From positions 52,266,001 through 52,330,000 of the forward strand of contig CM060732.1 of assembly GCA_030704615.1 (NCBI GenBank): a stretch of DNA of 64,000 nt, written 5' to 3'. The position numbers were made by a program, and so were the translations under genes. The stretch comes from Takakia lepidozioides. Lineage: Eukaryota; Plantae; Bryophyta. The notes beneath the pieces are model-generated. The model was not told where the DNA came from. It did no database searches and was given only the letters and a program-made list of their open reading frames with translations. This document shows positions 7,323 through 38,189 of this stretch, one piece after another. The first letter of the stretch is position 1; the number at the start of each line of letters is the position of its first letter.

Positions 7323-7754
7323 ATTACTCACTTCAACCAATACGGAGCTCTGATCACAAAGACTTGCGGTTGGAATATTTGATTCAAAACAGTTTGCTAT
7401 ACACCTTTATTCTTCACTACAAGATCTAGCATACACTAAAACGAAGAGAGAGAGAGAGAGAGAGCGATGGAGGGAGTAGGAAGAGGGAGAAAACAAAGAG
7501 AGAGAGAAGGAGCAAGAGAAGGAAGAACTAGATTGTGATGTTACTCGTCTAGAGTGGGGTTGCTTTATAGCAGCCTCCGCGGCTTCCCTCTAACTTTCTC
7601 ATGTCGTCCTCACCGTTGATTCAACAGATGGACGAGATGTAGTCTAGTAGTTTCTTCTTTAAAATAACAACACCATAGTTACACACCATTGACTTACTTA
7701 AGATGCATGTACGCATCTATATCCAGATAATATTTAATTCATTATTTTACAGTG

Positions 7755-8159: not shown

Positions 8160-8309
8160 TGAGCACCTTTGCCCGAAGGCACCCAAGGGTCATTCAGCCC
8201 TATTCCTACTACTGCCACTGCCCCCCCCACCACAGGGATAGCCCCTCTTGTGTCCCGACCCCCTGCCCTCAAGGCAAAAGGCCCCGACACGAAGGGATGG
8301 CTCAAATAA

Positions 8310-8610
8310 AGTCTCTTGAGGGAATGACATGATGACCCGCTTGTGGGCCACGACGGGGCCAAGCGAACCGCGATACTCTTGAAGAAAGAATATTTCTGGG
8401 CGGAGCTAAGGGGAGAGGACAAGAAGTATAGCAAGATATGCACCACATGCCAGCAAAATCGGAGTGAGTACAAGAGGCAAGCGGGGCTGTTACAACCCCT
8501 GCCGATTTCCGAAGGACCTTATGAGAGTGTCTCGATGGATTTCATGACGAGATTGCCGCTGTCAAGAGGGTATGTTGCAATCATGGTGGTGGTGCAGAGG
8601 TTCGGGCGGC
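8310..8610 (+). mobile_element. Ty3/gypsy integrase fragment
   Basis: HDDPLVGHDG...YFW...CTTCQQNR...GLLQPLPI...SVSMDFMTRLP. Confidence 0.85.
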
Positions 8611-8919
8611 CAAACGGAGAGAAGTTTCAACACTGGAAGACAAGTAGTCTTTTGGGCTCAAGAGACGCCATGCGTTAGACATTTTTATTTGTTGTAGGCC
8701 TCAAGGTCTTGACAAGGCTGTTGTTTCCTTCAATGCCTATAAATTTAACCTTTTTTCTGGAAAAATTTGTACTCACTCCCAAGCCTATAATAGATATCAT
8801 TAGTCGGTCATTGTGGTACAAGCTTGTGAGCTTGCTTGAACATGTATGTTATTAGGGAGACACATCATCATGAGTTGTTCTAGAGTTTTTGGATACACTT
8901 TTAGTACAATGATTCACAG

Positions 8920-11620
8920 AGAAGAAGCATTTCTATACAATGTCTGCAAATGACTAGAATTAACATATAAACATGCAAGATATTTTTCATCCCTTAGGGT
9001 ATCTAGAAAAGCTTAGGATTTTTGGATTTCATCCAGAGGGTCCTTGATTTTGAGCATCAGATTTACACGCAATGCTGGAAAAACATGTGTAGAGATATTA
9101 GCACTAGATAATGCAGCAATCTCCACTATCCCATTTGGGCAGTTTTTCTCAGCCCATGAAACATGCCCGCATTATCTAAAGCTGACAAAATAAAAACGAT
9201 AATCTAAGTCTTCGATTCTTTATTTTATCAAGTTCGGGGCCACGCACACATCCTAAAAAAATTATAAAAAAAATCTCACTTGTGGAACATGCTACCTTCT
9301 TCCTACCTTCTTTTTTATTTACCCCCTTTATATGACGATTCTCTTCTCTGTCTATATAATGTTTGCAAATGACTAGAATTAGCATATAAAGATAGTACAT
9401 GCAAGATTTTTTTCATCCTAGGGTATCCAGAAAGCATGGGGGGTCACTATATGTATTTTTTCCATATCACGTGCGTACAAAAGTATATTTATACTAGGCT
9501 ATATTTTTTTTTTTCCACCCTATCTTTAGGTAATATTATAAAACGCTTTGTTTCATAATGCTTCTTATTGAACAATATTAGGGTCTTGAATGCCAGCGCG
9601 TGTGGCTGCGGCGGGGCTCGTGTATGGCAGAGGGGTCACATAGGGTGGGAGCGCCCCTCCCTGGACCCGGCCTGTTTGCTAGGCCCACAAAACACATAAG
9701 CTAGTCTAATGGGGCTCACAATATGCACATAAAGCATTAGCTATTGCAAAGGTTTGTAGAAAGTGGCGGGTAGTGTGGTGGTTTAGACCTATGAACAATA
9801 AACATGAAGTTTGGTGTTCATATCTTGTTAGATTATACTATGGCAATAATGTGTGTTATTAATTATATATTTTGTCGAAGGGTCTGGCAGTCCGCTCGTC
9901 GGTTTGCTGGAGGAGGGTTTGCCCAGTCCGTTCGTCGCTATATGCTATATGGGCATGTTTCATGGGTTGAGAAAAACTGCCCAAATGGGACAGTGGAGAT
10001 TGCTGCATTATCTAGTGCTCATATCTCCGCACATGTTTTTCCAACATTGTGTGTAAATCTGATGCTCAAAATCAGGGACCCTCTAGATGAAATCCAAAAA
10101 TCCTAAGCCTTTCAGGCTTGGGGGTCACTCCCCGTATTCTCAAAACCACGTGAGAACAAATATAGGGTGTAGTTTATTTTTTTGAGGCAAATTCTATAAA
10201 AGTTTTACTTAGAAAATATGGTAGGACAATATCTAATCACCCTTATTACCCTTATTACAGATAAAACCCTTTTTTAAAAAAATATCACAAAAAATCCAGA
10301 GTTTTACTTAAAAAATTAATGTAATAAAGGTTTTATCTACAGTGTAATATATCCATCCTTGTGAAGTTTCTCATATTTCATCCAACTCTAATCCATCAGG
10401 ATGAAATTTTCTCAAAACTTCATTCATTCATCAGGCTTATTCAATGAATAAGCCTGGTCTGCCCAAATCTGGGCGTCCTTCGATTATGACGTTTTTGAAT
10501 TTTGAACCATCTCGGAACTTATACTATTTAGATCCAAGTGATATTGTGGCTTTGAATGAGTTCGTGGCTAATGAAAATTAAACTTTTCTTTGGGTCCAGC
10601 ATTTGACTTATGTATGTACATGCTTTGAATTTTTTCAATTATTTAAAAGACAATCTAAAATAGGGTCTAATTAATTGTTGCACAAAAAATTATAAAAAAT
10701 AGGGTATTATGAAAGCCTCTCATTTTTTAATATTAGGGTCTTTGAATGCACCTATGGCCCCGCCGGCCCATGGGTGAGCTCATAAGCCCACCGCCCATTC
10801 ACCGGGTCGGCCAGAATTTTCTAAGTCCTTGTTCATGTACCGCGGCGGACCTTCTAGCAGACCGGGCAGACCCTCCACCAGACCGACGAGCGGATTGGCA
10901 GACGCTGACAAAATAAAAACGATAATCTAAGTCACCGGTCACCACCTTTGGTACCCCGTGGCGGCATTTCGCATATTGGTTGGTTGACTAATGGGAAACT
11001 TTGATTCTTATTTAATCAAGTTCAGGGCCACGTGCACAGCCTCCAAAAATTATAAGAAAAATCTCACTTGTGGAACATGCTACGTTCTTCCTACCTTCTT
11101 TTCTACTTACCCCCTTACACGATGATTCTCTTCTCTGTCTATATAATGTCTGCAAATGACTAGAATTAGCATATAAAGATAGTACATGCAAGATATTTTT
11201 CATCCCTTAGGATATCCAGAAAGGCTTATGATCTTTGGATTTCATCCAGAGGGTCCTTGATTTTGAGCATTAGATTTACACGCAATGCTCGAAAAACATG
11301 TGTGGAGATATTAGCACTAGATAATGCAGCAATCTCCACTGTCCCATTTGGGCAGTTTTTTCTCAACCCACGAAACATGCCCACATTATCTAAAGCTGAC
11401 AAAATAAAAACGATAATCTAAGTCACCAGTCACCACCTTTGGTACCCATGTGGCGGCATTTCACATATTGATTGGTTGACTAATTTGAACTTTGATTCTT
11501 ATTTTATCAAGTTCGGGGCCACGCGCACAACCTACAAAAATTATAAGAAAAATCTCACTTGTGGAACATGCTACCTTCTTCCTACCTTCTTTTTTACTTT
11601 ACCCCTTACATGACGATTAT
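8920..11620. repeat. Complex direct plus inverted repeat block (about 490-bp unit), probably DNA-transposon subterminal repeats
   Basis: 8970-9210 matches 11185-11425. 9213-9440 matches 11001-11220 and 11491-11618. An inverted copy lies at about 9955-10110, and 9870-9930 is inverted relative to 10860-10915. Confidence 0.75.
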
Positions 11621-14003
11621 TAATGTAAATCCTTGTTTAGCTTATTACAGCCCTCGCTTTTTAATTCCTCGACCACTCTCTAATGGACAGGGCCCACACA
11701 AACTTGGGGGCTTACCATCCCCGGACAACCGTTTAGGCGATAATTAATTCAAAATGAAAGTGCCCAATCAATTTTGTGAATTTTTCAGATTTTGGCCTAA
11801 TTGTTGGGAAATTATGGGACCAAAGTGCCTAATGCCCCAAAATTCCACCAAAAAACTTGCAAGCCTCTTCTCATGTTGTTTGTAATAAGATCAAAATTTC
11901 TTTGAACAAAAATCAATACAAATGTATGCGTGCGGAAATAACTACCCTACCAGCTTACCACAACTCAAGAGTACTATTATGTAAGAGGTTTCACCATGCA
12001 CCAGCATACCAATATGAAAACCAGTGCACCCAATGACCAATGTATGAAAGCCCTCTACCAATGTGCCTTACACTAGTGTGGACTATATTGAACTCACCTA
12101 AAGTGTGAGAGCGAAGGGAGAGCTTGCTTGTACTAGCTTGAGCCTTGGAGCACCCACAACAAAGAGGGGCATTTTTAGGGTTTCAAAGGAAATGAAAGGT
12201 AGCCGGAGCCTGGAAGGGCCCATGGGCATTGGGTGTCTATTTTGTAATTCTATTCTTAAGAAAATAAATGTTTTCTCTTCTCATGTGCCTAATTCTAAAA
12301 AATTATAGCATGAAGATGCCTAATTTGAGAAATTGTTTTCAAAACATGCCTAATTTTCTGATTGATTGATTTTATTATTAGGCGCAAAAAAGCCTAATGG
12401 TTGTCCATGGACGGTAATTTAACACCATTCAAACGTTAGAAAGTTAAAGAAAGAGAGTTGATGGATCGCTGGCACAACAAGATGTAAAATACATCACAGT
12501 CAACATTTGTTCAGAATATTCTATCGTTTACAACATCTTTTTCCCAATCCCCTACATAGATTACCTTTTGAAGGTAATGTCTTTTGTACATTATATTCAG
12601 TTTGACTTTGGACGTCATGGCACAAACGGTGGGTTTGTAAGGTCAATGCCAAATCCCAATGACTACGAATGAATGAAACTGTCTCTCATCATCTACGGAC
12701 TAATCCACTAGTAAATTTCTCATCCATACATAACGGAACCACTGGTCGGTGACTGATGAGCCAGCTAAAAATACCCAACTAGTAAGGCTTACTAAACCGG
12801 GCTAAACATTAAACAACTAAACACTGACTAAACACTGACTAAACCTAATGACACCAAACAAAAACGATCACAGAAAACAAACTAAAGCGACCACTTCTAC
12901 TTACCCTACACTAAATAACAAGCAATTCTGTGACTACTTACTCCTACTAACCCACTAGCAAAGCACGAACTAAACCTGCTGACAGTGTAAAAAACGCTTC
13001 AAATGTTTTTAGTGTATTTTGCGTGGCCTTATAGGGCGTAACCCTAAGCGAGGAGCTTACCGGATCGCTAGTTCAAATTTGAATAGTTTTATGCTTGGTA
13101 AAATAACTGGTGAACTGGTTTACCATTGATCTGGTTTACCCTTTGTCGTACTTACAGGCTAGTAACTAATCAGTAACTAAACTCGTACACTGACGAAACT
13201 GAATACTAACTAACCACCGACTAAACCGTCCAACCCTAACGAAAGCATGCGGGCTGCCCGGAGGGGGATAACGCGTAGGGGTGTGGTTTTTCGCGCTGCC
13301 CGTCGGCCGGCGACAAAACATTGACAATGCAGTGACTCGCCGTGTTTTGCATCCTCGTTTTATCCTGGCCGCCAATGTATATTGATGGCGATTTTGCGTA
13401 GAAGATGGGTGGTATTGTGAAAATGGAGAATATTGGTTCCCAGTAACTGAGAGCGATCCGACGTATCGTGGGCGTCGGCTGGGAAAGGGGAGGATGGTGT
13501 GTAAAAGATCGGCACTTTGTCTCTCTGCTTTACATTTCTGGGTTCTTCCGTGCACTCCAGGGTGTTGAGCTTCGCGGGTGACTTCCTTGACAGCTCTCCA
13601 CATCCGCAACCGCCTTTGCTCTAGATTTCGGATAGTCAGCGTTTCCTTGGTAGTTCACTTGTATCTCTCTGCGGCCTCTCTTTCTCTCTCGTTCTTGAGT
13701 TCTTATGTTACGACCAAGACGGTGTGTGGAAGCGAGGAACACCAATACGTAATCTGCTGGAATATTGTGAGCGGGAAGAAATTTTGGGTTTACACTACTA
13801 CCGGATGATATTGATAGGTGCAAATCTTTTGAAGTGGTTCAGTTGGTTCAACCAAAACGTTCTGTGGAGGCGACGAAATACCAAGACCGTAATCTACTGG
13901 ATTGTGAGCGGTAAGAAAGCTGGGTGTACACTATAATCGGACGATTTGACAGGTATAAAGGTTGTGAAGTGGTGCACACAGGAATCTGCACGTAGAAAGG
14001 TGA

Positions 14004-20654: not shown

Positions 20655-22150
20655 GATGGCAGGGCTGAATCAGGCACAACTATCTGAACCATGCACCTCC
20701 ACCACAACCCCTACTATCCAAGCAGGGCCAAGAACGACTACATCTCGCTTAGCCATTCTTTCGAACATTTGCCGCGAAATCTTCATGTCCCCACATTTGG
20801 CATACATGTCAACAAGGGCAGTCTCCAGGATGATGTCAGGGACAATTCCTACTTTGATGATGTCAGCATGGACCTCTTTACCCTTTTCCAGGGCTGTCAG
20901 GCTAGCACATGCATTGACAATGAAAATGTAAGTCACCCTGTCAGGCATTACCCCTTCCTGTATCATTCACCCATACATCTCTAAGGCCTCCACACCCTTT
21001 CTGGTCATCCATTAGACCAAGTTCGGCTTCAAGCCTTCCTGTTGCATTTGTTGAAATAATTGCAGGGCCTCCCTAATACATCCATTGCTGAGCATACCCT
21101 GTGCCCACTCTTGTTGGGCCGTCTTGGCCAACACTTGATGGGCCTCCTTTATGCTCCTGCATTTGGCATACATATTGACCAGAGCCGTCTCCAGAATGAT
21201 ATCTGGCACAACTCCAGCTTTGATGATGTCAGCATGGATCTTTTTGCCCTTCACTAGGGCTCCCATGTTGGCACATGCATGTAGAATAGAAGTGAACATG
21301 ACCATGACCGTGCTGGGCGACAACCCTTCCCCTATCATCTGCTCACACATATCAAAGGCCTCCCTACCAAACCCATGCTTGGCATATGCTGTTATCATTG
21401 TACTTCACGTAAACATGTCTCGTTCAGCCATCTTGTCAAAGACTTGGCGTGCATCCACCACACTCCCACACTTTGCATACATGTTGACAAGGGTGTTGAG
21501 TAGAAAGATGCTTGATTGAACCAGCCTTGGCCATGCCTCTATTGGCTTCAGGGGGAAGAGACCTCAAATCCCACGAACCAGAGTAGTTGATATTGGCTCC
21601 GGCCATGGAATGCTGTAATTGCAGGATATGCTCAGCATGGGTGTAATAGGGAGGCCAAGGAGTTATTTGTGCAAATGCAACAGGAAGGCGTCAAACCAAA
21701 TGTGGTGTCATGGACTGCAATGATTGCAGGATGAGTATGGTAGGGAGGCTTTCACAAGCTATACGCAAATGATACCAGAAGGGGTATCACCCAACAGGGT
21801 CTCTTTCATTTGTGTTCGTAATGCGTGTGCAAGCCTGGCAGCCCTGGAAAAGGGCAAGGATGTCCATGCTGACATGGTCAGAGCTGGAATTGCACCACAT
21901 ACATTCTGGAGACTGCCCTTGCTGACATGTATGCAAAATGCGGAAGCATGAAGGATGCGCGTCAATCATTTTGGCTGTATGGTGGACCTTCTTGGCCGTG
22001 CAGGGTGCTTGGATGAGGCAGAGAAGTTTAGGGTTAACCAAACCCCAATGGAACCACATGCTGCTGTGTGGGCCTTGCTTGGGGCCTGCAGAATTCATGG
22101 CAACGTGGAAGTGGCAGAACGTGCAGCAAAATGGCTTGTCGAGTGGAGAT
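20655..22150. pseudogene. Scrambled PLS-PPR pseudogene with internal inversion
   Basis: The plus-strand exon start cag|GATGGCAGGGCTGAATCAGGCACAA matches 49470. PPR repeats then run on the minus strand (about 20735-21530), followed by plus-strand PPR, S2 and E remnants (21605-22150) with frameshifts. Confidence 0.85.
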
Positions 22151-22594: not shown

Positions 22595-22870
22595 GAATTT
22601 CCATTTGCTTCAAATGCCTTCGCGCAATTCATACTCGAAAATCAAAGCTAGCATGCAGGTATCAGCTTCTATCAAATGTGAGTTCCTCCCGGTAGACAGG
22701 TCCACCAGGCGGTTTAAGAACGCCCCTGGTCCAGTTTGCAATGGATGCGAAAAAAGTGCCAGTTTGCAGGGTTGGGATATTCTCAGTGACCTGATCGTTC
22801 GTGATAGAACCTTCCGTACTCTCACCGACACCATTCATGGTTATTTGCTGACTGTCCGAGAGGATGAATT
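22595..22870 (-). pseudogene. Truncated paralog of the 33254-34783 coiled-coil gene (one N-terminal repeat only)
   Basis: NGVGESTEGSITNDQVTENIPTLQTGTFFASIANWTRGVLKPPGGPVYREEL aligns with HGVGESRNVSESAVMNDQVTESCEHIPTQQSGAFFASFAKRFKGAVLKPPSRSVDQEEL. It is followed by a stop/frameshift, an MNCAK remnant, and then loss of homology. Confidence 0.85.
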
Positions 22871-23243
22871 GTCGCAGCGTTGTACACAACATTCAGAGCT
22901 CTCTGTGTGCACACTCGATCCAGCTCACAGCTCACAGGTAGCTCGCAGCTTCTCGGTCGGTACCTGTAATAGGAACAAAAGATGCTTGAGCATTAATCTA
23001 CTGTTTTGGTTTCCTTACCGCCTATATGCAGCAGTCGGCAGTTACTTCTATAATCAAAATAAACTAGTTGACATGATGCAACTGTAGTATAGAATCAAAA
23101 TAAACTAATTAATGTGATGCAACTATAGTTTGGTTGACTGGACGTAACACAGAGTGCACATGAATTCAAGACTTGCACACATTTGCCCCAGCGATTTCTG
23201 CCATTCCCTCTCCGGTTTCCTTTCGAGCGAATAGCTTTGAAGA

Positions 23244-25928
23244 ATGGCGACGCCCGTGGTAGGTGGTTCAGATGCAAGGGTCGTGGCGAGTCTGGACTTC
23301 GGGACAACTTTCTCAGGATTTGCTTCAGTCCACACATCCGAGCCATCGAAAGTCTGGACATTCTATGAATGGCCTGAGCAAGCAAGCGGCGGTGGAAAAC
23401 CGTACTGCAAGACCCAGACTTCGCTGTACTATTCTGAAGACAAGGGGGGAAAGCTGAAGCTTGAGAGTTGGGGCTGGCCTGCTTCGGTCACTTACGCGAA
23501 AGTCTGTTCCACCCGGAAATCCAAGCAAGTTACTAAACAGGGAGTCGAGCTGGAGAAATCGAAGCAAGTTCCTACAAAGGAAGCCGATCCGGAGAAATGG
23601 AGGCAAGTTCCTACAAAGAAAGTCAACTTAGTAACGCATCAAGCAGGCTCCGAGAATGGACCGCTGTCCCCACAAACGTTGTCCGACAGCTTGGTAACTA
23701 GAACCGTGATAACAGAGCAGCAGGAAGTCGTGCTGGAGAAGTGGAAGCAAGTTCCTACAGAGGAAGAGCTGGAGAAATGGAAGCAAGTTCCTGTAAAGGA
23801 AGTCAAGCTGGTGAAATTACTCAATTTTCAACTAGCAGAATCTGAAGTTCCTGCACAGGATGTCAAAGTTGGCAACCTGACGCATTTCAAGCTTCATCAA
23901 GCAGGCTCCGAGAGTGACCCGCTGTCCACACAAACTTTGCCCGACGGCTTGAGAACTAGGACCGTGATAACAGAGCAGCAGGAAGTCGTGCGGGAGAAAT
24001 GGAAGCAAGTTCAGACTACACAGGAAGTTGAGCTGGAGAAATCGAACCCAGTTCGTACAAAGCAAGTCAAGCTGGAGAAGAAGTTCCACAAACAACATCT
24101 AGCAGGCTCTGAACCTGCAAAGGGAATCAAGCTGGAGAGGAAGTTCCACAAACTTCATGTCGGAGGCTCTGAAGTTCCTGCACAGGATGTCAAAGTTGGC
24201 AAGCTGGTAACGCATTTCAAGCTTCATCTAGCAGGTTCCGAGAACGGTACACTGTCCGCACAAGCTTTGCCCGACGGCTTGACAACTAGGACCGTAATAA
24301 CAGACTATCTGCGAGAGATATCCAAGTTTATCATGGTTCATCTCAAGAACCGCTACGGAAACCAATTAAGCATGCAGGAAGTCCAGTGGTGCTTGACTGT
24401 GCCTGCAATTTGGGACGACCAGGCCAAGCAGCGGATGATATTATTTGCTGAGGAGGCGGGTCTTGTTCGAGGTTCTAGCAATGACATTGCGGCGAGCCCG
24501 CATCCTCTTAAGATAGTCCTGGAGCCGGAGGCAGCGGCTGTGTACTGCCTCCAGAATTTGGAGGGCTTGTCATTTCGAGAGCAAGACAAATTCCTGACTG
24601 TCGACATTGGTGGAGGCACTGTCGATATAGTCGTTCATGAAAAGCTCCAGAGCGGTGACACAACTCTTGGGGTTCGTTCGTGTTGGTCCGAATCTTCGTG
24701 AATGTTTGTTCTGACGTCCATCTTGATTGAAAGTAGCACTTGTTTATTTGAGACCGCCTGATCTCAAACAGCCTTGCTAAAAGTATCTCTTCTCCTCGCT
24801 TGTTCCGTAACTGGCAGCGCCTGTGACGCCAGGTGCTGCGTTCCTTCTCATAAGGAGGCTTGATGTTACATGGTGGATCCAACCAAAGTTGACCTCCACA
24901 TGTGTGTATCAATTGTGCAGTTGAAGGAGGTGACAAGGAGCACAGGCGGTCTGTGCGGGGGAACGTATGTTGACAAGAACTTTCTGCAGCACCTTGCCGA
25001 GCGAATTGGCTGCCTACGCTCCTTCTTCGAGGAGAATCCTTTGACGTTGCTCTCGACACTTCGGTGGTGGGAGGGCATCAAAAGCACGTTCGATGGAACA
25101 CAGAACGCAACCTTCGACACACCCGCCAAGCTTGCCAAAGCCTGGGAGGTCTACGACAGCTACCAACGACTAGGAGAACCAGCTGAACATGGCTATGATG
25201 AGGTGGAGTTCACAGAGAGGGACTTGATGAGCATATTCGATCCGGTGGTGGAGCAGATCATTAAGCTCATCAAAGATGCACTTGATCAGGTCTGGGGGGA
25301 GGTGAAGGTCATCATGGCCGTTGGAGGGTTCTCTGCTAGTCCCTACTTGATGAGGAGATTGAAAACGGAGTTCCAGGACATCGTTGGAGAGGTCGTGAGC
25401 CCGCCCGATCCTGGCAGCGCGGTTTGCGTGGGTGCAGCAATGCTGGGCGTAGCTAAACAAGACATCATTCGTTCCCGGATCTGCAGAAAGACTTACGGTC
25501 AGCGTATAAGTAGAGAGTTTCTTCGTGGAGATCCGGTTAGCCAGCAGTTCACCAACGACGACGGCTATTTGATGTGCGATCACGTCTTTGATGTTTTCGT
25601 CCGAAATGGAGATGAGGTCCCCATCAATCACTCAGTCACTCAATCATTCTTTCCTGGCAGTCATCACGCAAAAACAATGCTGATCGACATCTACAGTACA
25701 ACCAAGAAAAGTCCCCAGTACACATGCGAGGAAGGCGTAGTGAAGGAGGGGGAATTCGTACTGGACATATCTGCAGGAATGCATCTGGACATGGAAAGAC
25801 TAGTGGAAGTGACGATGTTCTTTGGTCGGTCCAGCATTCAGGTGACGGCCAAGGGTGTCAACTTCGACACAACTAGCGGAGGAGCTGGGAACACTATTCC
25901 CGTGGCCTTCAGTGGGGACAACGAGTAA
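23244..25928 (+). CDS. HSPA12-type atypical Hsp70 (copy 1), about 811 aa, 2 exons
   Basis: Exons 23244-24671 and 24921-25928 (GT..AG, phase 0). Motifs DFGTTFSG, WCLTVPAIWDDQAKQRM, LEPEAAAVYC, DIGGGTVD, GGLCGGTYVD and VGGFSASPYL. About 230-aa repetitive insert in lobe I. Confidence 0.9.
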
Positions 25929-28604
25929 GAATGCTACGGGGCCAGAAGAAGAAGACCAAGGTTCTAGTTCAAACTTCAAACCCTGTTGCAGCGGCACCCG
26001 AAAACAAAACACAACATAAGCTTAAGAATTTCGCAATGTTGATCAAACTCCATTTATGCTCACTCACTTCTAAGTTTTGTCCACAACAAATTCCATATAC
26101 AACTTATGTTCGTGGCTGTTGTGTTTTTCCTTGCTGTTTCTGCCCACCGTGGGCTGGTTTCCTGGCTGTATGGGGACCCGTTCCCTTTGTTAACCGCCAC
26201 CGTTTCTGCAGGCTTAACTGTTTCCTTGCCATCTAATGTGTTTTTGGCTTCTGCGTACCGCGATAGTTAGGAAGCCCAGCTCTTCCAAGGAGCCACATTC
26301 CTGCAACACGTGCTTCCAAAAGGGGCTGCCGCAAGAGCTCATCCTCTCTTGTGGTTGGCTAAAGAACTTATGAATTTGGAACAAAACGTTGGCTCTCCAT
26401 GTTGGAGACACAGTCAACTCCACTCGGCCTCTTCTCCCAACTTCGGGCAAGCAACTTGGTTGGAAATGGCTCCCAGAAGGAACCATCACAACCCTGCTTG
26501 GACCCCCGTTTGGAATGAACCTACCAAAGGACCAAACAAACACATGGGGCGATCATCTCTAAATTTTAAAAAAGGGTCTATTGGGGTTCCAGACATCTCA
26601 CCCCAGCTGGACGTGCTCTCGTAGCCAAACAGATACTAGTGACAGGTATAAGTATGGTACTTCGCCTCTCTTTGGAGCTCCTCAGATTGCAAAGATTATG
26701 AAACTGTTGGAAACTTCATATGGGGAGCTGATGTGTGTTACGGTTGTTGGAATCATTGTCATCTACTCTGGAGTTTGAAATTACTATCTACTCTGGAGTG
26801 GTAGGTAAGTAGCCTAAATTGAGAATGGCAGCATAGTATGAACTATAGTATTTAAAGTTTTTCACTTCAAAAAACAAAAAAGTTTATGATGACCCTATTT
26901 AATTTCTGTAATGTCTATATTTGGGTCACTTGATGAAATCTATTTGATGCAGTTTTTTGGGGACTAGCCTCATTGCAAACAATGTTTTTGTTTTTAGCCT
27001 CCTGCCAATAATAAAGGCCCCATGACGTCTGGGACTGTCTGAACGAGGGTGGCTAGTTGCATGCGGGCCCCACATGCACTCCATACGAAAGCCAAGTTTG
27101 ACAAAGATTATAGAATAGAGGGAGCAAAATATCTAGAATGGAGGGTGTACAAGAGTAGGCGGGTGGTAGTGGTTGGATAGTTCGGGCAGGGGAGTTCATT
27201 GTTGGTGGTGGAAAAGTGGGCCGATGGAACAAGGAGGATGGAGGCTTGGAAGTGGGTAGAGGCCTGGCGATAGTTGAGACAGAGGGATGGTAGCCATAGG
27301 CATACAGGGGATGCGGCACACATGTATACAACATGCAGAGCAGGATGGGCCTTGGCTGTACTTTGAAGCTGGATAGCTTTCATATGTTTTTAGGCTCTCT
27401 ATGCAAACATAAGGGTTGGATATACTTTTATGTAGGACGTCTACTGAGTTACATGACAACTTCTACTTTTATTACGTCATATTATCTTTATACGACACTG
27501 ATGTTTATGCTTGAAGCTTTGCGATGTTGTAAGATATCAAGTTGTCAAGCTTGTTCCCACAAGATCCATGCTCCTAGGTCGGATATAGAAGAGCCGCAGG
27601 GATGAGGGGTTAAATAAGTTCAAGAAATGAGCGAAAGAGGAAGCGAGATCCAAGACAAACTCTTCAAGACAAGAGACAACGCTTTGCTCCAAAGGAGACT
27701 GACAATGCTAGATCAAGGGAAACTACTAGCATCTTGTATGGCACATGGACATTTTTTCACATGATATTATAGAAGAACAAATTGATGAAGATGGAAGTAA
27801 GTCTATGACTGGAAGGTGAAAAGAAACACACATTTGAGGTTAGTCAGAATAGATTGGCTGGTGCTCACTACTTTGGGCCCAACACAATTGCAGGATTCAT
27901 AACCACCATATCCAGGCCTCTATCCGTTGACAAAGACCAACCTGCCTTGTCATATTTCTCTATGTTTCATTCTCACATTGTATGCCTATGGAACAATTTT
28001 TGGAAGATTATGAAGTAAATATGAAGCCAAGACAAGCCAATCTTTTTGTTTTTAGCCTCTTGCCAAAAATCTATGATTTTTTCAAAATAATCCTGATATA
28101 TTGTCACTTGAATGTATCCTTGAATGGATTCAATGGTACCTTTGGACGGTAACACCTTGGGCCACAATAGGGGCTCTGGAATATCTCAACACTTTCGAAC
28201 ATCAATCATCGAGCACGGCCATTTTTGGGAAAAAAAAAATGAAAACAAATTCACATAATATTCACTTTTGATTTTACACTCTCTTGACAAAAGAATATAT
28301 CAGCACCGGTGGAATCCATAACTCCACAAATTGAACTTTGTAAGCAACATGACAAGTCAACTCCATGTTTCATCGTCAAGAAAGAAAAGTAGGGCGCAAG
28401 GAAGGTATAGTCCGGTGAGTGTGAACAGAGACCCACAATGCAGTCATTCTGAAATCTATTTATCGACAACCAACCCTTATACTCAAGTTGTTGTCTATCG
28501 TCAGCAGTTACCGCTTTTTTTAGGCTTACAGAAATATCTTGCATATTTTCAGCTTATAGCAGTTTTTGTGTTATACATGAGCTCATGGTTTCTTGTTGAG
28601 TACT

Positions 28605-31600
28605 TGTCAAGAAATGCAGACAGACTTACACGAGTTCTAGGATAGCAAGGAGACATTTTGTCTAACCCACTATGCTTCAACATTGTCTTTGCTGCTTCTA
28701 CCGATGACTAGTGATCAATACAAACTTAGAGCAAACACAGATCAGATTCTTCATGTTAAAACAACGTTAGCACATCTGTGCATACAGATTGCTGCATACT
28801 AAAACGATGCCAGCACAAAAGAGAGGTTTTTGCAACAACTAAAGCTACTTAAAGAAAGCTTAGCTATCAAGAAAATAGGTGAATGCTAGAGGTCACGTGG
28901 TTTTGGACATGAATGTTATAAAAGCCAACACTCCCACTCATTCATCAAAACTGACTATCTTCACATTTGCAAGAAATAGAACAAAGGAAACACAAAGAGA
29001 TGATCGCCTGTTAGAGCTCCCACTCAGTCATCATAAACTACACTCCGACTTGTTTTCCTTTGAAATGTGAGCTCCCCTGATTTCCATCAGATGCAGGCAA
29101 AGGCACCACACCCATGAGCTCTCGAAACTTCTGGAAGAGATCTTTGCATAGTCGTTTAGTAAAAATATCAGCAATCTGCACCCCAATATGAATGTACATA
29201 GGTTGGACCTGCTGTTCATTGTACTTCTCTCGGACAAAGTGGAACTGAATGTCCACATGCTAAGTCTTTTGGTGAAACTCAGGATTCTTCACGAGCTTGA
29301 TAGCTGACTGGCTATTGCAATGTATGACACTGGCTGTCTCTTGAGGAACGTCAATACTCCCAAACAATCGTCTGAACCAAATGGCTTCTTTAGTAGCAGT
29401 ACATGCCGCTATTTATTCAGATTCTGTCGTCGAATTTGAAGTGCACTTTTGCCGTTGACTACTCCATGCAATGGCAGCATTGCCAAAAAGATACACGTAT
29501 CCTGAGCGAGATTTCTTAGTGTCGATGTCACCACCATAATCAGCGTCACAGAAACCTGTAAGAGAGTTATCATTCTCTGTCCCATGATAGCAGATGCCAT
29601 GGGTACAAGTACTCTTCAGGTAACGAATGATTCGCTTAACTGCATTCCAGTGAGAAGTCCTTGGTGCTTCACAGAACTTAGCCACAATTCAGGTAGCATA
29701 TGCAATGTCAGGTCGAGTAGGTATCATTGCAAACATGATACTCCCCACAGCTTCCTTGTATGGCACGTCAATGCAAAGCTGATCGTTACTTTCTTCTTCT
29801 GGAAAGACTGTAAAATTCACGTGTGTGTCTGACGGCGTGGAAACTTCATTGGCATCCTTTAAACCAAACCGATGGATTACCTTCTGGATATAACGTTCTT
29901 GATTTACAAACAGAGCTCTCCTTGCCCTAAAACGATGGATGTGCAAGCCCACATAGTAAGATGCATCTCCTGTGGTTATCTCAAATACAGATTTGAGATA
30001 TTTGACCATATCATCAAACTTGTATCGATCTATGCAACAAGAAATGTCATCGTCCACAAAGATTCCCGACATGGTCTCAACCTTGTCTGTGCTGGAGTAC
30101 ACAAAAGGGATCAGCTTCACTGGCCTTGAGATTGTATTTTGTAAGAAAGTAGTCAAACTTCACATTCCATTGTCTTGCTACCTGTTTAAGGCCATAGAGA
30201 CTCTTTAACAACTTAAAGACTTGATTCTCTTTTCCAATCTGCTTGTAGCCTTCTGGCTGCTTCATATAAATCTCCTCCAGAAGATTACCATTCAAAAACG
30301 CGGTTTTAATGTCAAACCGAACAATCTCCATGTCGTGAGTGACTGCCATAGCTAGAATGATGCGAATGGAGTGATGCTTCACTACGGGTGAGAATGTTTG
30401 ACTGAAATCAATTCCTGCTGTCTCAGAATAGCCTTTGGCAATAACTTTGGCTTTGAAATGCTCGATTTATCAGATTTGTACTTCACCTTATAAACCCACT
30501 TACAGCGCACAACCTTTCCGTTGACAGGTAACTCTTGAAGAATCTATCACGGACATAGCCAAGAGGAACTTACCAGGAGTAAATACCAAAAATTACCAAG
30601 TTATCATGTTACCGGAAATTACCACAATTTACTGTAATTTACTATAATCTATCATGATTTACCATAAATTACCATAAATTACCAAGTTACCAGAAGTTTA
30701 TCAAATTATCGAAAGTAGCTTGGGAAACTGCTCAGGAGATTTCCTTTGGTAGAAACTTCTCCATCAAGAAACCTCCATTGGGGGAAGCTTTTTAGGGAAC
30801 TTCCTACTAGCCAGTATATATAGGAGGCGAGACTGGACACTCTTCAGTCTCGCCAATACAAGTTCAGACTACTATTGTTTCCAGTCTCAGTACTCAGCTT
30901 CTAGTACTCTAGCCCAGTTTCCAGTATCTGACACTCTAGTCCAGTTTCCAGCATTCTGGTATTGAAGTGGTGTTCCAGTATCTTGTACTCTTGTCCATTG
31001 TTATAAAGATCATCTTGATTCATGTTTATCCATCATGCATTCGGCCATGCCGACCTTGACTTCTTGTCTAGTCTTGTACCTCTAGTCCGATTTCTTATGT
31101 GTGTTCAGTCATGTTCTCGTCCTTGACAGAATCCATGTATTGTTTTTCCAGCAAAGATGCATACTCTTCATCCATTGCCTATTGCCACAATTCTGCATCC
31201 TTAGATCTCATGGCCTCACAGAAAAACCTTGGTTCATCTTCAAGATAAGTGTCATCCACTACATAAGCAAATGAAGTGTCACCACGCTTCCGCGATATGT
31301 CCCGCTCACCTAATCGAACAGGTGATCGACGAACCCTAGGAGGTTCATTCTTGTCAAAGCGGCCTTGAGCGGCAACATGGATTTCTTCGATCTTTTCAGC
31401 AACAGAACGTTCTGCAACATTGACTTCTTCACTTTCTTTATCAATAGAAAGCTCTATTTCACTCGGAAATGAACTGTCATCGAACTCCACATCTATACTA
31501 ATAGAGGTTTTCTTGGAAACTGGATCCCACAACTTGTAAGCACAACTCTTTGTGCTATACCCTATCATCAGCATCTTTTGACTCTTTGGTTCTAGTTTCT

Positions 31601-32817
31601 TTCATAGCTGTATTGGAATGTTTTTGAAAGCACTACATCCGAAGACTCTGAGGTGACCAACTGATGGTTTTTCTTTGTACCATAGTTCGTATGGAGTACT
31701 CCATTCGGTTTGCTTGCAGGTGACCTTATTCAAGGCATACATCGCTGTGTTGGCTGCTTCTGCCCATAGAATATCTCTAGCATGTAACATGCTTTCGACA
31801 ACAATTGTTCGATTGTCACGTTTAACATACCCGTTCTGTTCAGGAGTGTAAGGGGCACTATTCTCATGATGGATTCCCTTGCTATCAACATATCATTCAA
31901 ATGCCTTTCCAACCTATTCCTCCCATATCTGTTCGCAATTTGATTATCTTAGTCTGAATATGTTGGAACACCTCTTTTTCTAGGATCTTGAAGCATTCAA
32001 ATGCTTCTGACTTGTTACTGATAAAGAAAATGAAACGGAAGCCATGAGCATTATCCCTGAAAAGAATGTAGGAAGATGCGCCGCCCATGGATTTTACAGA
32101 CATAGGTCCACAAATATCTGAATGGAAAAACTCTCCGGGGGTAAGAGATCTCTCTTTCTCAGGCTGGAGAATGTGTATGTTCTCCTTAGACCTCTGCTCA
32201 TGGATAGCTTTGAGCCTATCCCACATTTTTGTAGCAGTTGTGCATTGGATGAGCATCTCTAGATAATTCTCATCAATCGCTGATGCTATCAGTACTCTTG
32301 TCTGATTATTCTTATCTATTCAGTCATCCTAATCATCTGCTTCTACCAACGTCTCAGTGCCATTGACAATCTTCATATATTTCTTGGCATGGAAAATCAT
32401 TTCCATTTGTATCGCCACAGTGCTCAGAAGCTATGCTTCCTATCAAACTTTCTGATAGGTGCTACATCTCTAGTCTCCATCGCTGTGAACAGATCAGTCA
32501 CGTCTCTTGTTTCTACACTAGCCTAACATGTGTGGGCCCATAACCTGTCAAGAAATGCAGACAGACTTACACGAGTTCTAGGATAGCAAGGAGACACTAG
32601 TGATCAATACAGACTTAGAGCAAACACAGATCAGATTCTTTGTGTTAAAACAACGTTAGCACATCTGTGCATACAGACTGCTGCATACTAAAATGATGCG
32701 AGCACAAGAGAGAGGTTTGTGCAACAACTAAAGCTACTTAAAGAAAGCTTAGCTATCAAGAAAATAGGTGAATGCCAAAGGACACATGGTTTTGGATAAA
32801 TGTTATAAAAGCTAACA
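28605..32817 (-). mobile_element. Decayed Ty1/copia LTR retrotransposon
   Basis: LTRs 28605-28930 and 32546-32817 (TG..CA). TSD GTACT on both sides (28600-28604, 32818-32822). PBS GGTTATGGGCCC and PPT TGAGTGGGAG. gag, integrase (HSDICGPM), RT (DIKTAFLNG, FVDD) and RNase H (FCDADY) fragments with stops and frameshifts. Confidence 0.95.
30545..31128. mobile_element. Solo LTR nested in the copia pol region
   Basis: TSD GAATC (30540-30544 and 31129-31133). Termini TATCACGGAC...GTCCTTGACA form an imperfect inverted repeat. Central TATATATA; no ORF. Confidence 0.85.
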
Positions 32818-33253
32818 GTACTCTGTTCTTGGCAACTGCAACGAAGTAACATCTTGCGGGAAATGCTTGGAAGAATTTGCGTGAACAGAAAATCTGCATG
32901 CTCTTAGATAGAAGGCCCTGGGGTCAAAAATTACAGGCTGGCCTGCATTTCACGAAACCTTCTTGATTTCTCCATAGTTAGTCTTGTTTGTCAAGCTCTT
33001 TTGATGGATCTGATTCAACAATGGAGAATAGTGACAGCACATAAAGACTAACTCTTAATCGGTAACTTCACACAAAAGTTACATACCTGTACTGTTATGG
33101 TAGTTTCTAATCACACAACAAAGGCTATCATATATAAACTGAAGAAGTATAATGAAAGATGCATCAAAAGACCGCGCTCCACTGGAGTCCGTTCCAAGTC
33201 TTTCACTTACACAAGAAAGGCAAGAAAACTTCCAGGTTTCTCTTGTTAAATTG

Positions 33254-34783
33254 CTACAAGCGAATGACATAAACGCGACTTTTCAGTATGAATTTGTGGA
33301 TACGGAATCCAGGCAGAAGGACGAGGGTTACTCTTGGTGGGGTTTCTTCCTCTTCAGTCGGCCCCTCGCCATCCCCCTCTGGATCTTCCGAGACAATACT
33401 CTCCATGTACTCAATGTCGAATGCTGCATTTCTGCCCACTCGGATCACTCTTGCGCATGGCTCAAACGAGAACGTCAGTTTGTGCAACATCCACACGCTC
33501 TTGGCCAATCGGAGGAAGGAGTCACGCAGTCGACCGTCTTGTCTGGTCTCCGTGGGCTCCCCGCTGGATTGCTTGGTGCTTTCTTGGATGGTGTCGAGCT
33601 CCTTGCCGAAGAGCCTTAGAAACTTTTGATTACAGAAACTGAGGAAAGCTTCTCTGTACTCGGCCGGCATGTCAGAAGCTTTCGAGAAGGCCTTGTACTC
33701 CTTGAAGAACGCCGCTGGAAGTTGATCCGGAGGTGGAAACTTGGCCCGCTGATTCTCATCCCCAAAGTCTTCCAGTTCGAAGCCAGAGAAGAAGATGGAA
33801 GACACATAAGCTTGGTAACCAAACTTGACATGAGCTTTTCTGGAGAAGGGGATATCAAGCCACTGTCCGGATTCAGACACGTTGATAGTTCCGCTGACGG
33901 TCATGAATTCCTTCGTGAAATCCGATAATTCAAGCTGCACCTTTTGGAAGGCGCCTTCAAGGAGAACAGGAGTAGCAGAAGAATCGGGAAAGGAGCCGCT
34001 TGTGACTCTCTCGTTCGCTATTTCCCTTTCAAGTAATTTTATTTGCTCCTGAAGTCTCTCAGCCCTTTGCTCTGCTAACCCCGCGTTGTTGTGGTCTGGA
34101 TATCTTTCTTTGCCCTGCTGACGCGCTGAGTTCAGCTCTCCACGGAGGTGATCAATCTCACTCTCGAGTCTGCTGATCTCCATGTGGCCACGTGCAATTT
34201 CCGTTTGCTTCACTGCCTCCACGCAATTCATACACGGCCTTCCTTGGAGTTCGTGATGGTCGACAGATCCACTAGGCTGTTTGAAAACGCCCCTGAACCG
34301 CGCTGCAAAGGATGCGAGAAAAGCTCCAGGTTGCTGGCCGGTTCGGATATGCTCGTAAGACGCAGTGACCTGATCGTTCTTGACAGTGTCTGAAAAGTTC
34401 CGACTCTCACCGATACCATGGATATTTGATGATTGCTCATGCCGATTATGCTGACGCGCTGAGTCCAGCTCTCTACGGAGGTCATCGTTCTCACTCTCGA
34501 GTCTGCTGATCTCCTTGCCACGTGCAACTTCCATTTGCTTCAATACCTTCGCGCAATTCATACACGGCGTTCCTTGGAGTTCCTCCTGGTCGACAGATCT
34601 ACTAGGCGGCTTAAGAACGGCGCCCTTGAACCGCTTTGCAAAGGATGCGAAAAAAGCTCCAGATTGCTGGGTTGGGATATGCTCGCAAGACTCAGTGACC
34701 TGATCGTTCATGACAGCGGACTCTGAAACATTCCGACTCTCACCGACCCCATGGTTATTTGATGACTGTCCGAGAGGATCCAT
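33254..34783 (-). CDS. Coiled-coil protein with GIL1/IRK-interacting-like C-terminal domain (GrpE-like pattern), 509 aa
   Basis: Two 111-aa N-terminal repeats, each ending PCMNC plus coiled coil. The C-terminus FLRLAKSVWMLHKLTFSFEP...FDIEYMESIV...VTLVLLPGFRI...KSRVYV is typical of the plant GIL1/IRKI family. Confidence 0.85.
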   Translation of the reverse strand: MDPLGQSSNNHGVGESRNVSESAVMNDQVTESCEHIPTQQSGAFFASFAKRFKGAVLKPPSRSVDQEELQGTPCMNCAKVLKQMEVARGKEISRLESENDDLRRELDSARQHNRHEQSSNIHGIGESRNFSDTVKNDQVTASYEHIRTGQQPGAFLASFAARFRGVFKQPSGSVDHHELQGRPCMNCVEAVKQTEIARGHMEISRLESEIDHLRGELNSARQQGKERYPDHNNAGLAEQRAERLQEQIKLLEREIANERVTSGSFPDSSATPVLLEGAFQKVQLELSDFTKEFMTVSGTINVSESGQWLDIPFSRKAHVKFGYQAYVSSIFFSGFELEDFGDENQRAKFPPPDQLPAAFFKEYKAFSKASDMPAEYREAFLSFCNQKFLRLFGKELDTIQESTKQSSGEPTETRQDGRLRDSFLRLAKSVWMLHKLTFSFEPCARVIRVGRNAAFDIEYMESIVSEDPEGDGEGPTEEEETPPRVTLVLLPGFRIHKFILKSRVYVIRL

Positions 34784-35287
34784 TGAGGCAGCAATCTCAG
34801 CAATCTCTCTTGCTGCTATGGACCGAAGGGATGCACTGAACCAAACACAGAATGCAAAGGAGCAATGTAACCAGCTTGCGATGAAATGCTCCCTGCATGC
34901 ACAACATTCACAGCTCTCCGATCCAGCTCAGAGGTAGATCTACAGCGCGCACCTTCTCGGTCTATATCTGTAATAGGAACAAAACATGCTCATTAATCTA
35001 CTGTTTTGGTTTACTTACGCCATAGATGTGCAGCAGTCGGTAGCTATTTCTAGAATCAAAATAAACTAGTTAATGCAATGCAACTGTGTCGGCTGGAATC
35101 AAAATAAACTAGTTAATGCAATGCAACTGTGTCGGCTAGAATCAAAATAAACTAGTTAATGTGATGCAACTGCAGTTTGGTTGACAATGCATTCTGGACG
35201 TAACACACAGTCCACATGCATTCAAGACTTGCACACCTTGGCACCCAGCGACTTCCTGTCCCTCTTTTTCGACAATAGCTCTGAAGA
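34784..35287. promoter_or_regulatory. Shared divergent promoter region with a 43-bp tandem repeat x3
   Basis: 504 bp between opposing ATGs. Unit ctagaatcaaaataaactagttaatgcaatgcaactgtgtcgg at 35050, 35093 and 35136. The paralogous region 23048-23130 has two copies. Confidence 0.7.
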
Positions 35288-38084
35288 ATGGCGACGGCCG
35301 CAGGTGGTTCAGATGCAAGGGTCGTGGCGAGTCTGGACTTCGGGACAACTTTCTCAGGATTTGCTTCAGTCCACACATCCGACCCATCGAAAGTCTGGAC
35401 ATTCTATGAATGGCCTGAGCAAGCAAGCGGCGGTGGAAGACCTTACTGCAAGACCCAGACTTCGCTGTACTATATTGAAGACAAGGAGGGAAAGCTGAAG
35501 CTTGAGAGTTGGGGCTGGCCTGCTTCGGTCACTTACACGAAGGTCTGTTCCACAGGGAAATCGAAGCGAGTTCCTAGACAGGAAGTCGAGCTGGAGAAAT
35601 TGAATCAAGTTCCTACTAAGGAGAACGATCTGGAGAAATGGAAGCAGGTTCCTACTAAGAAAGTCGATCTGGTGGAGAGGAAGTTACTCAAACCTCAACT
35701 AGCAGGCTCTGAAGTTCCTGCACAGGATGTCGAAGTTGGTAACCTGGTAACGCATGTCAAGCTCCATCTAGTAGGCTCCGAGAATGAACCGCTGTCGGCA
35801 CAAGCTTTGCCCGACGGCTTGACAACGAGGACCGTGACAACAGAGGAGTCACAGGAAGTCGTGCTGGAGAAATGGAACCAAGTTCCTAGACATGAAGTCG
35901 AGCTGGAGAAATCGAAGCAAGTCCCTACAGAGGAAGTCGCTCTGGAGAAATGGAAGCAAGTTCCTAGAAAGGCAGTCAAGCTGGTGGAGAGGAAGTTACT
36001 CAAACTCAATCTAGCAGGCTCCGAGAATGGACCGCTGTCCACACAAGATTTGCCCGACGGCGTGAGAACTGGGACCGTGATAACAGAGCAGTCACAGGAA
36101 GTCGTGCTGGAGAAATGGACGCAAGTTCCTACACAGGAAGTCGAGCTGGAGAAATCGAAGCAAGTTCCTGCAAAGGGAATCAAGCTCGAGAGGAAGTTCC
36201 ACAAACTTCATGTCGCAGGCTCTGAAGTTCCTACACAGGATGTCAAAGTTGGCAAGCTGGTAACGCTTTTCAAGCTTCACCTAGCAGGCTCCGAGAATGG
36301 ACCGCTGTCCGCACAAGCTTTGCCCGACGGCTTGACAACTAGGACCGTGATAACAGACTATCTGCGAGAAATATCCAAGTTTATCATGGTTCATCTCAAG
36401 AACCGCTACGGAAACCAATTAAGCATGCAGGAAGTCCAGTGGTGCTTAACTGTGCCTGCAATTTGGGACGACCAGGCCAAGCAGCGGATGAAATCATTTG
36501 CTGAGGAGGCGGGTCTAGTTCGAGGTTCTAGCAATGACATTGCGGCGAGCCCGCATCCTCTTATGATAGTCCTGGAGCCGGAGGCAGCGGCTGTGTACTG
36601 CCTCCAGAATTTGGAGGGCTTGTCATTTCGAGAGCAAGACAAATTCCTGACTGTCGACATTGGTGGAGGTACTGTCGACATAGTCGTTCATGAAAAGCTC
36701 CAGAGCGGTGACGCAAATCCTCGGGTTCGTGTTTGTCCGAATCTTCGTGAATGTTTGTTCTGGTCCTGATTGAAAGTAGTGTTTGTTTGAGACCGCAGCC
36801 TGCTCTCTCAACAGATTTTGATAAGAGTATGTCTTCTCGTCGTCTGTCCTTGCTTGTTGCGGAAACAAATAGATCCATACTAGAATTAGAACGTAGGATG
36901 CGGAGACCATGCAGAAGCTGGGATGTTGGCCAATGTTGTTCTCTCCAATCACTTTTAAGTTAGTATTACAACGGCAGAGCCTGTGACGCCAAGTGCTGCG
37001 TTCCCTCTCATAAGGAGGCTTGATGTTACATGGTGGATCGAACCAAGTTGACCTCCACATGTGTGTATCAATTGTGCAGTTGAAGGAGGTGACAAGGAGC
37101 ACAGGCGGTCTGTGCGGGGGAACGTATGTTGACAAGAACTTTCTGCAGCACCTTGTCGAGCGAATTGGCTGCCTACGCTCCTTCTTCGAGGAGAATCCTT
37201 TGACGTTGCTCTCGACACTTCGGTGGTGGGAGGGCATCAAAAGCACGTTCGATGGAACACAGAACGCAACCTTCGACACATCCGCCAAACTTGCCAAAGC
37301 CTGGGAGGTCTACGACAGCTACCAACGACCAGGAGCAGCAGCTGAACATGGCTATGATGAGGTGGAGTTGACGCAGAGGGACTTGATGAGCATATTCGAT
37401 CCGGTGGTGGAGCAGATCATTAAGCTCATCAAAGATGCACTTGATCAGGTCTGGGGGGAGGTGAAGGTCATCATGGCCGTTGGAGGGTTCTCTGCTAGTC
37501 CCTACTTGATGAGTAGATTGAAAACGGAGTTCCAGGACATCGTTGGAGGGGTTGTGAGCCCGCCCGATCCTGGCAGCGCGGTTTGCGTGGGTGCAGCAAT
37601 GCTGGGCGTAGCTCCCCAAGACATCATTCGTTCCCGGATCTGCAGAAAGACATACGGTCAGCGTATATGTAGAGAGTTTCTTCATGGAGATCCGGTTAGC
37701 CAGCAGTTCACCAACGACGACGGCTATTTGATGTGCGATCACGTCTTTAGTGTTTTCGTCGAAAATGGAGATGAGGTCCCCATCAATCACTCAGTCACTA
37801 AACTACTCTTTCCAAGCTATCATGGCTCGGAAACAATGCTGATCGAAATTGTCAGTACAAACAAAAAGAGTCCCAAGTACACATGCGAGGAAGGCGTAGT
37901 GGAGGAAGGGGAATTCGAACTAGACATGTCTGCAGGAATGCACCTGGACATGGAAAGAGAAGTGGAAGTGACGATGTTGTTTGGTCGGTCCAGCATTGAG
38001 GTGACGGCCAAGGGTGTCAACTTCGACGCAAGTGGAGGAGCTGAGAACGCTATTCCCGTGGCCTTCAGTGGGGGCAACGACTAA
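35288..38084 (+). CDS. HSPA12-type atypical Hsp70 (copy 2), about 813 aa, 2 exons
   Basis: Exons 35288-36724 and 37080-38084. Same ATPase motifs and intron position as copy 1, with a differently arranged repeat insert. Confidence 0.9.
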
Positions 38085-38189
38085 AAGGATGTGAGGACTC
38101 GAGGGCTAGAAGAAGACCAAGGTTCTGGTTGGCTCCAGAATGCAACGGTAGAACACATAAGAAGCGTCAGTTATCACGATTTTGAACCG

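Follow-up and report, generated by a model that had tools for sequence, protein, structure and literature searches.

We describe a pair of divergently transcribed genes, encoding an atypical Hsp70 and a coiled-coil partner protein of the GIL1/IRKI family, in a stretch of 64,000 nt of the bryophyte Takakia lepidozioides (contig CM060732.1). This whole stretch is referred to here as the window, and all coordinates of its units are window positions. We propose that the two genes belong to a conserved two-gene chaperone module in which a GrpE-like regulator serves an HSPA12-type Hsp70, a proposal for which we see about an even chance. It draws on the predicted fold of the partner tail, on recurrence of the gene pair in other bryophytes, and on transcription of both genes. 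An original prediction, made by reading the sequence, had described this head-to-head arrangement as a duplicated Hsp70/GrpE-like pair possibly devoted to defence. Its gene identities have stood, together with the GrpE-like fold and the recurring linkage; duplication of the whole arrangement, partner included, and the defence role have not. The pair is laid out as follows, where X5 denotes a transcriptome-like run carrying the same species label as the window.

33254-34783, minus strand: coding sequence of the partner gene, one intronless open reading frame (ORF) of 509 codons (509 amino acids), covered by an unspliced X5 contig.
34784-35287: intergenic region of 504 bp, common to both genes, with divergent ATG codons on either side.
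35288-36724, plus strand: Hsp70 copy B, exon 1, 479 codons, with the phosphate-1 motif, the repeat insert and the connect-1 and phosphate-2 motifs.
36725-37079, plus strand: Hsp70 copy B, intron with GT..AG ends in phase 0, whose 355 bases are skipped by an X5 contig.
37080-38084, plus strand: Hsp70 copy B, exon 2, 334 codons plus stop, encoding ATPase lobe II and then a C-terminal beta-rich part.
35557-36191, plus strand: repeat insert of the Hsp70, 39-bp units within a larger duplication of about 250 bp, in the nucleotide-binding domain.

The ORF positions bear out the predicted distance of 504 bp between start codons on opposite strands. The two plus-strand ORFs of copy B (35288-36769 and 37020-38084) are the two exons of a single gene. 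They were queried one by one in the searches described below, and structure prediction was confined to the partner.

Judged by its sequence, the plus-strand gene is closer to HSPA12 than to canonical Hsp70, DnaK or Hsp110. As had been predicted, the Hsp70 ATPase motifs can be read in their HSPA12 form: DFGTTFSG, EPEAA and DIGGGTVD in exon 1, and in exon 2 the blocks GG..GG..VD, VGGFSASPYL and PGSAVC.GAA (adenosine, connect-2), which are invariant across 14 relatives. The Pfam family PF00012 matched exon 1 at 24.9 bits (threshold 20.6), and the DnaK and HscA models of NCBIfam, whose cut-offs exceed 600, reached only 15-29 bits. Among relatives that have a name, the best are "heat shock 70 kDa protein 12A-like" proteins of Selaginella, fungi and animals. 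In a sequence search of the PDB, exon 2 matched no solved Hsp70. A tandem-repeat insert of about 250 amino acids interrupts ATPase lobe I and is missing from the closest relatives.

The minus-strand gene encodes what its sequence identifies as a non-canonical GIL1/IRKI-family protein lacking the DUF641 N-terminal domain. Its parts are these:

33257-34096, minus strand: family-conserved region (residues 230-509), consisting of a long helix, an inserted helical sub-domain, and a GrpE-like hairpin and beta domain.
33257-33670, minus strand: GrpE-like region (residues 372-509), made up of a helical hairpin and, after it, a small beta domain.
33269-33442, minus strand: GIL1_IRKI_C domain (PF24994, residues 448-505), corresponding to the beta domain, in which the P-G-F and W positions are invariant.
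34116-34765, minus strand: tandem unit of 333 bp (111 amino acids) in the N-terminal third, 2.0 copies with 85% matches according to Tandem Repeats Finder.

The GIL1/IRKI-type ending that had been predicted for this gene was recovered by Pfam, in which PF24994 matched with E 9.7e-8 and a score of 32.3 bits where the cut-off is 27; the same domain matched 76 of 76 relatives. Residues 207-509 align with the angiosperm DUF641/GIL1 protein P0002 at 25% identity. PF04859 (DUF641) is present in P0002 and in a second angiosperm relative, P0001, and gave no match on the partner at E <= 1; the lineage-specific 111-residue unit, present twice, stands where the DUF641 domain would be. An initial protein search with the whole partner had returned two angiosperm matches only. 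An exhaustive HMMER search with residues 230-509 returned 246 clusters of relatives, the closest at 47% identity. In a tree the partner falls outside a well-supported canonical clade of vascular-plant DUF641 proteins.

It was suggested in the original prediction that the partner tail follows the pattern of the GrpE beta domain. This possibility gains support from structure prediction. The AlphaFold2 model of residues 230-509, built from an alignment of 76 GIL1-like proteins only and without templates, had a mean predicted local distance difference test score (pLDDT) of 88.7 and a predicted template modelling score (pTM) of 0.83. Along the chain a long helix comes first, then an inserted helical sub-domain, a hairpin of two long helices and a small beta domain. 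Residues 372-509, modelled alone (138 amino acids), reached a pLDDT of 85.8. When the 280-residue model was compared to the PDB with Foldseek, Thermus GrpE came first (E 0.12) and eight of the top 25 chains were GrpE or its mitochondrial counterpart GrpEL1. With the 138-residue model the top 12 matches were all GrpE/GrpEL1 chains, from six organisms (E 0.014-0.5, probability up to 0.98, alignments of 134-165 columns at 13-27% identity), and the next match had E 3.7. Neither model had a Foldseek match in the PDB reaching E 0.001. A second aligner, VIA-align, run over 48,161 chains, placed GrpEL1/GrpE at ranks 1-3 with most of each target covered; with the domain model, only GrpEs covered the beta domain (rmsd, root-mean-square deviation, of 2.5-3.6 A; 16-28% identity). 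Finding GrpE first in two structure searches speaks to the structural similarity on which the prediction had depended.

Other comparisons point the same way. All of the 30 nearest models in a shape search of the ESM Atlas belonged to the partner's own family, to MIEAP, to an unnamed fungal cluster or to one of two GrpE clusters. Among the 76 relatives, GrpE (PF01025) was the sole second Pfam family matched by more than one of them (4 members, best E 0.003). Using hhalign, G..FD..YME and PGF of the partner aligned with LDPNVHQA and KGY of GrpE, in the identical register to that of the motif pattern originally proposed, at P 0.06. This comparison is weak, its GrpE template being nearly single-sequence, as the homologues gathered for E. 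coli GrpE were all enterobacterial with at least 86% identity. The partner sequence searched against PDB sequences found no GrpE and no Hsp70, and sequence similarity to GrpE taken alone is not significant. It is thus reasonable to think, on the strength of the models, that the C-terminal region of the partner probably has a GrpE-like fold, and homology between the partner tail and GrpE is plausible.

The pair is found elsewhere. HSPA12-like genes adjoin GIL1-like genes at 4 of 10 GIL1-like loci, which are the window itself, one locus of the moss Ceratodon purpureus (L008, CM026424.1), one of the liverwort Calypogeia fissa (L010, CBCUJL010000026.1) and L093, from an ENA assembly; linkage of the two families thus recurs beyond the window, as the original prediction required. 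In Ceratodon L008, a GIL1_IRKI_C gene (7103-8866, minus strand) stands head-to-head with the Hsp70 gene P0010 (10001-11815, plus strand), and a second Hsp70 gene on its other side completes a trio of Hsp70, GIL1-like and Hsp70 genes over 3701-11815; one gene of the pair lies between KC19_4G212100 and KC19_4G212300. In Calypogeia L010, an Hsp70 gene (1-1507, minus strand) is head-to-head with a GIL1-like ORF (3344-4447, plus strand), and a second GIL1-like gene lies at 10001-11269. The ORF at 3344-4447 is intact, has 367 codons and is unannotated in the public record. In L093 the two genes are in tandem, 2.4 kb apart. Both genes of the fern Adiantum nelumboides are on one contig of 369 kb with locus tags two apart, at a distance of more than 10 kb.

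Adjacency could also be inherited or duplicated synteny without function, and the GrpE likeness could reflect a common arrangement of two helices plus a small sheet. We consider this improbable. A rough estimate of chance adjacency gives less than 0.001 per locus, to be compared with the 4 of 10 observed; it takes a handful of HSPA12-like genes per genome, as observed, together with assumed genome sizes (hundreds of Mb), and the loci are not independent. Moss, liverwort and window share the head-to-head orientation. In the trees, one deep land-plant Hsp70 clade (Ceratodon, L093 and Calypogeia) pairs with one GIL1-like clade, and the window Hsp70 and its partner each sit in clades apart from these. 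The paired genes are congruent on both trees, which fits an old pair duplicated as a unit, within a small sample in which some branches have low support. As to the fold, two structure aligners put GrpE first and both the ESM Atlas and the Pfam scan point to GrpE.

Both genes of the pair are transcribed and the predicted intron is spliced out. An X5 contig of 2043 nt covers 33200-34959, that is, the entire partner coding sequence, unbroken, and at least 176 nt of 5' untranslated region. Several X5 contigs cover Hsp70 copy B from 35579 on, and the jump that one of them makes from 36723/4 to 37079/80, with GT..AG ends, coincides exactly with the predicted intron. No X5 contig covers the intron or 34960-35578. 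A further contig, from another public run, X7, shows the same splice with the letters of a second Hsp70 copy of the window, copy A, at the junction, and copy A thus also appears to be transcribed.

The repeat insert of the Hsp70 differs in one X5 variant, which carries an in-frame deletion of 39 bp (one unit) at 35863-35901, with 35862 joined to 35902. This indicates that the copy number of the 39-bp repeat varies between samples of the same species label.

The intergenic region contains a repeat of its own:

35050-35172: tandem repeat of 43 bp, 2.9 copies with 95% matches, in the middle of the intergenic region and uncovered by the transcriptome-like contigs.

This repeat is a candidate cis-element of a shared, bidirectional promoter. 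Inside one of its units lies TTCTAGAA, a two-unit palindrome resembling a heat-shock element. The corresponding 43-bp repeat beside copy A, at 23024-23126, has fewer units than that at 35050-35172.

How could such a pair work? In the mechanism that we favor, a shared promoter region of about 0.5 kb would drive both an HSPA12-type ATPase and a divergently transcribed coiled-coil co-factor. The C-terminal 140 residues or so of the co-factor would form a helical hairpin and a small beta domain, as in GrpE, with a long helix ahead of them. The partner would dimerize through its helices and place its beta domain against the nucleotide-binding domain of the Hsp70. It could then control the nucleotide cycle of the Hsp70, most simply by promoting ADP release, as GrpE does for DnaK. 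Dimerization, physical contact and nucleotide-exchange activity are attributed to this pair by analogy with GrpE. A partial precedent is provided by COST1, a DUF641 protein that forms a dimer, and whose C-terminal domain was modelled beside the GTPase domain of RHD3; COST1 binds RHD3, raises its GTP hydrolysis and is associated with the endoplasmic reticulum (ER) (PMC13189119).

Several results weigh against a GrpE-like regulator. At the level of sequence, the partner of the window has no PF01025 match at E <= 10, and two profiles, A2 and A4, retrieve no GrpE among PDB sequences. The partner also contains a helical insert of about 100 amino acids with no GrpE counterpart. Pairing is not universal: six of the 10 GIL1-like loci, Adiantum included, have no Hsp70 within 10 kb; for the other five of these six (Sphagnum, Ceratodon chromosome 1, L094, L095 and L096), none was found in the available DNA. 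From the other side, no GIL1-like neighbor was found for the closest Hsp70 relatives (L001-L007) or at 65 metagenome Hsp70 loci, and most HSPA12-like genes examined are unpaired. Among the proteins examined there were no fusions: an Hsp70 domain was absent from the long GIL1-like proteins, and the long HSPA12-like ones had neither a GIL1 nor a MIEAP domain. The known target of COST1 is a GTPase and not an Hsp70. Expression evidence consists of contigs of public runs only, which give neither levels nor strands. Finally, no seed-plant HSPA12-like protein is among the 120 best Hsp70 matches, although seed plants keep GIL1/IRKI proteins, so that the family can do without this Hsp70.

There is a rival reading. 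The genes may be coupled while the partner, as an adaptor or scaffold, serves to place or recruit the Hsp70, for example at membranes, the ER or the polar cortex; or its GrpE-like domain may act on another nucleoside triphosphatase (NTPase), with the Hsp70 as a client-handling helper. In favor of this are the persistence of the family in seed plants, where no HSPA12-like protein was among the best matches, and the large helical insert and N-terminal repeats of the partner, both missing from GrpE. Binding and stimulation of RHD3 by the ER-associated COST1 (PMC13189119) and the polar, cortical location of IRKI proteins in both Arabidopsis and Marchantia (bioRxiv 10.64898/2026.08.17.745269) are in line with such a role. 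We nevertheless hold it to be somewhat unlikely, because outside its own family and the uncharacterized MIEAP domain the tail resembles only Hsp70 exchange factors, and because the neighboring gene is an Hsp70 gene at four loci in at least three organisms. Regulation of the Hsp70 nucleotide cycle by a GrpE-like partner is thus the reading that we retain.

The history of the locus is recorded in a second, partial copy. By blastn and tblastn, copy A (22680-25969) aligns with 34577-38130 of copy B and contains these units:

22680-22878, minus strand: partner remnant, the frame-broken first 70 codons or so, seen by tblastn, blastn and alignment.
23244-24671, plus strand: Hsp70 copy A, exon 1, of an intact gene.
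24921-25928, plus strand: Hsp70 copy A, exon 2, following an intron at 24672-24920 that is spliced out in the X7 contig with copy-A letters at the junction.

The original prediction had the whole arrangement duplicated. This holds for the Hsp70 gene and the intergenic region; of the partner, the copied segment includes just the stub of about 70 codons, and neither blastn nor tblastn found a copy of its C-terminal three quarters near copy A. On its left side the duplication breaks off at about 22680, within the N-terminal repeat of the partner. Between the Hsp70 genes of copies A and B, the ratio of nonsynonymous to synonymous substitution rates (dN/dS) was 0.84 for exon 2, as against 0.34-0.61 for the conserved stretches of exon 1. 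Relaxed constraint would fit this pattern, and so would a degree of diversifying selection.

It had also been proposed that the locus is a fast-evolving defence or self/non-self module resembling a paired locus of nucleotide-binding leucine-rich repeat (NLR) genes, which would be compatible with either functional reading given above. Repeat expansions are indeed found in both genes, as predicted, the 333-bp unit occurring twice in the partner and units of 39 bp making up the Hsp70 insert; the number of the latter differs between samples, and exon 2 has the dN/dS of 0.84 mentioned above. In addition, X5 departs from the window at two coding positions of the partner, each time with a change of amino acid (T486A and D100G by codon reading), both families are expanded in Calypogeia and ferns, and the setting is rich in transposons. 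However, effector, NB-ARC, TIR and death-like domains are all missing, nothing meaningful came from PADLOC, NCBIfam returned nothing bearing on defence, and a dN/dS below 1 equally fits relaxed constraint after duplication. Little beyond the repeat variation and the exon 2 value speaks for a defence module, and we regard one as highly improbable.

The window as a whole is nuclear land-plant DNA whose contents include pentatricopeptide repeat (PPR) genes and transposon remnants, and the nearest kin of its genes are proteins of bryophytes, ferns and lycophytes. A PPR-type ORF fragment (21012-21398, minus strand) lies directly upstream of the duplicated segment. Two direct repeats, at 28602-28930 and 32543-32817, are about 275-330 bp long, 93-98% identical and 3.9 kb apart. 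Between them, the ORF at 31897-32256 (minus strand) reads by eye as a Copia-type integrase fragment. The segment 28602-32817 looks like a degenerate long terminal repeat retrotransposon inserted between both Hsp70 copies.

If the GrpE-like module is real, it would represent a GrpE-type co-factor that is apparently cytosolic in a eukaryote. GrpE in eukaryotes is, to our knowledge, confined to organelles. The combination of an Hsp70 with a GrpE-type partner is of an already known kind; the case presented here makes the biochemistry of three obscure families testable. The GrpE-like fold of the conserved tail and the recurrent, expressed pairing with HSPA12-type Hsp70s in early-diverging land plants lead to a single hypothesis, namely that GIL1/IRKI/COST1 proteins would be nucleotide-cycle regulators docking on nucleotide-binding domains, and it suggests a way to interpret the stimulation of RHD3 by COST1 and possibly the MIEAP domain. 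A broader scenario can be drawn, in which the C-terminal domain of plant GIL1/IRKI/COST1 proteins and the MIEAP domain, found in animals and fungi, are cytosolic branches of the GrpE fold that were ancestrally regulators of the HSPA12 nucleotide cycle. Bryophyte pairs would preserve this ancestral role, and in seed plants, which had no HSPA12-like protein among the matches listed, the family would have been redeployed onto other NTPases such as RHD3. This scenario is speculative and, on present evidence, we consider it unlikely. In the literature searched, no paper joins DUF641, IRKI or Mieap with GrpE.

Among known systems, the C-terminal domain of MIEAP/SPATA18 (PF16026) is the nearest family to the partner tail in the ESM Atlas apart from its own. 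The comparison of shapes gave template modelling (TM) scores of 0.49/0.52 over 100 residues, the language-model feature score was 0.79, below the level that the tool considers meaningful, and none of the 76 relatives had a hidden Markov model match to PF16026. The literature searched revealed no link of MIEAP to an Hsp70. The MIEAP-domain clusters nearest to the partner tail are commonest in Mollusca and Mucoromycota. Mucoromycota homologues also occur among the HSPA12-like relatives, a possible co-distribution of MIEAP and HSPA12. In a 2026 review, HspA12 function is given as unknown, with lineage-specific expansions that include those of HSPA12-like genes in bivalves (PMC13580251). The window Hsp70 shares with HSPA12A/B the ATPase motifs and the adenosine motif VGGF..SP.L, and differs from them by its repeat insert of about 250 amino acids and by its plant lineage, with two deep land-plant clades.

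The GIL1/IRKI/COST1 family is plant-specific, with scattered phenotypes in gravitropism, polarity, autophagy and ER shape, and we know of no agreed biochemical activity for it. The partner differs from its members in lacking DUF641 and in falling outside the canonical clade. It is also paired with an Hsp70, unlike canonical GIL1/IRKI members, in a comparison made without the neighborhoods of canonical-clade genes. The likeness consists of PF24994 above threshold, homology of residues 207-509 with angiosperm members, and a coiled coil ahead of the C-terminal domain. COST1 in addition is a dimer with its C-terminal domain beside a nucleotide-binding domain (PMC13189119), and for the partner a dimer is only proposed.

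The closest functional model is GrpE/GrpEL1 (PF01025; PDB 1DKG, 3A6M, 4ANI, 8GB3 and 9BLS), the nucleotide-exchange factor serving DnaK and mitochondrial Hsp70. The partner differs from it in having no significant sequence match, a helical sub-domain of about 100 residues that separates the long helix from the hairpin, a beta domain with an internal acidic loop, and a repeated N-terminal region of 230 amino acids. It is nuclear-encoded, reading by eye only gave no obvious transit peptide, and its neighbor is an HSPA12-type rather than a DnaK-type Hsp70, for which it would act as an exchange factor by analogy. Against these differences stand the same order of elements, with a long helix, a helical hairpin and a small C-terminal beta domain, and two signature motifs aligned by hhalign in the same order. 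The gene context is also shared: grpE adjoins dnaK in many bacteria, and the partner gene adjoins an Hsp70 gene.

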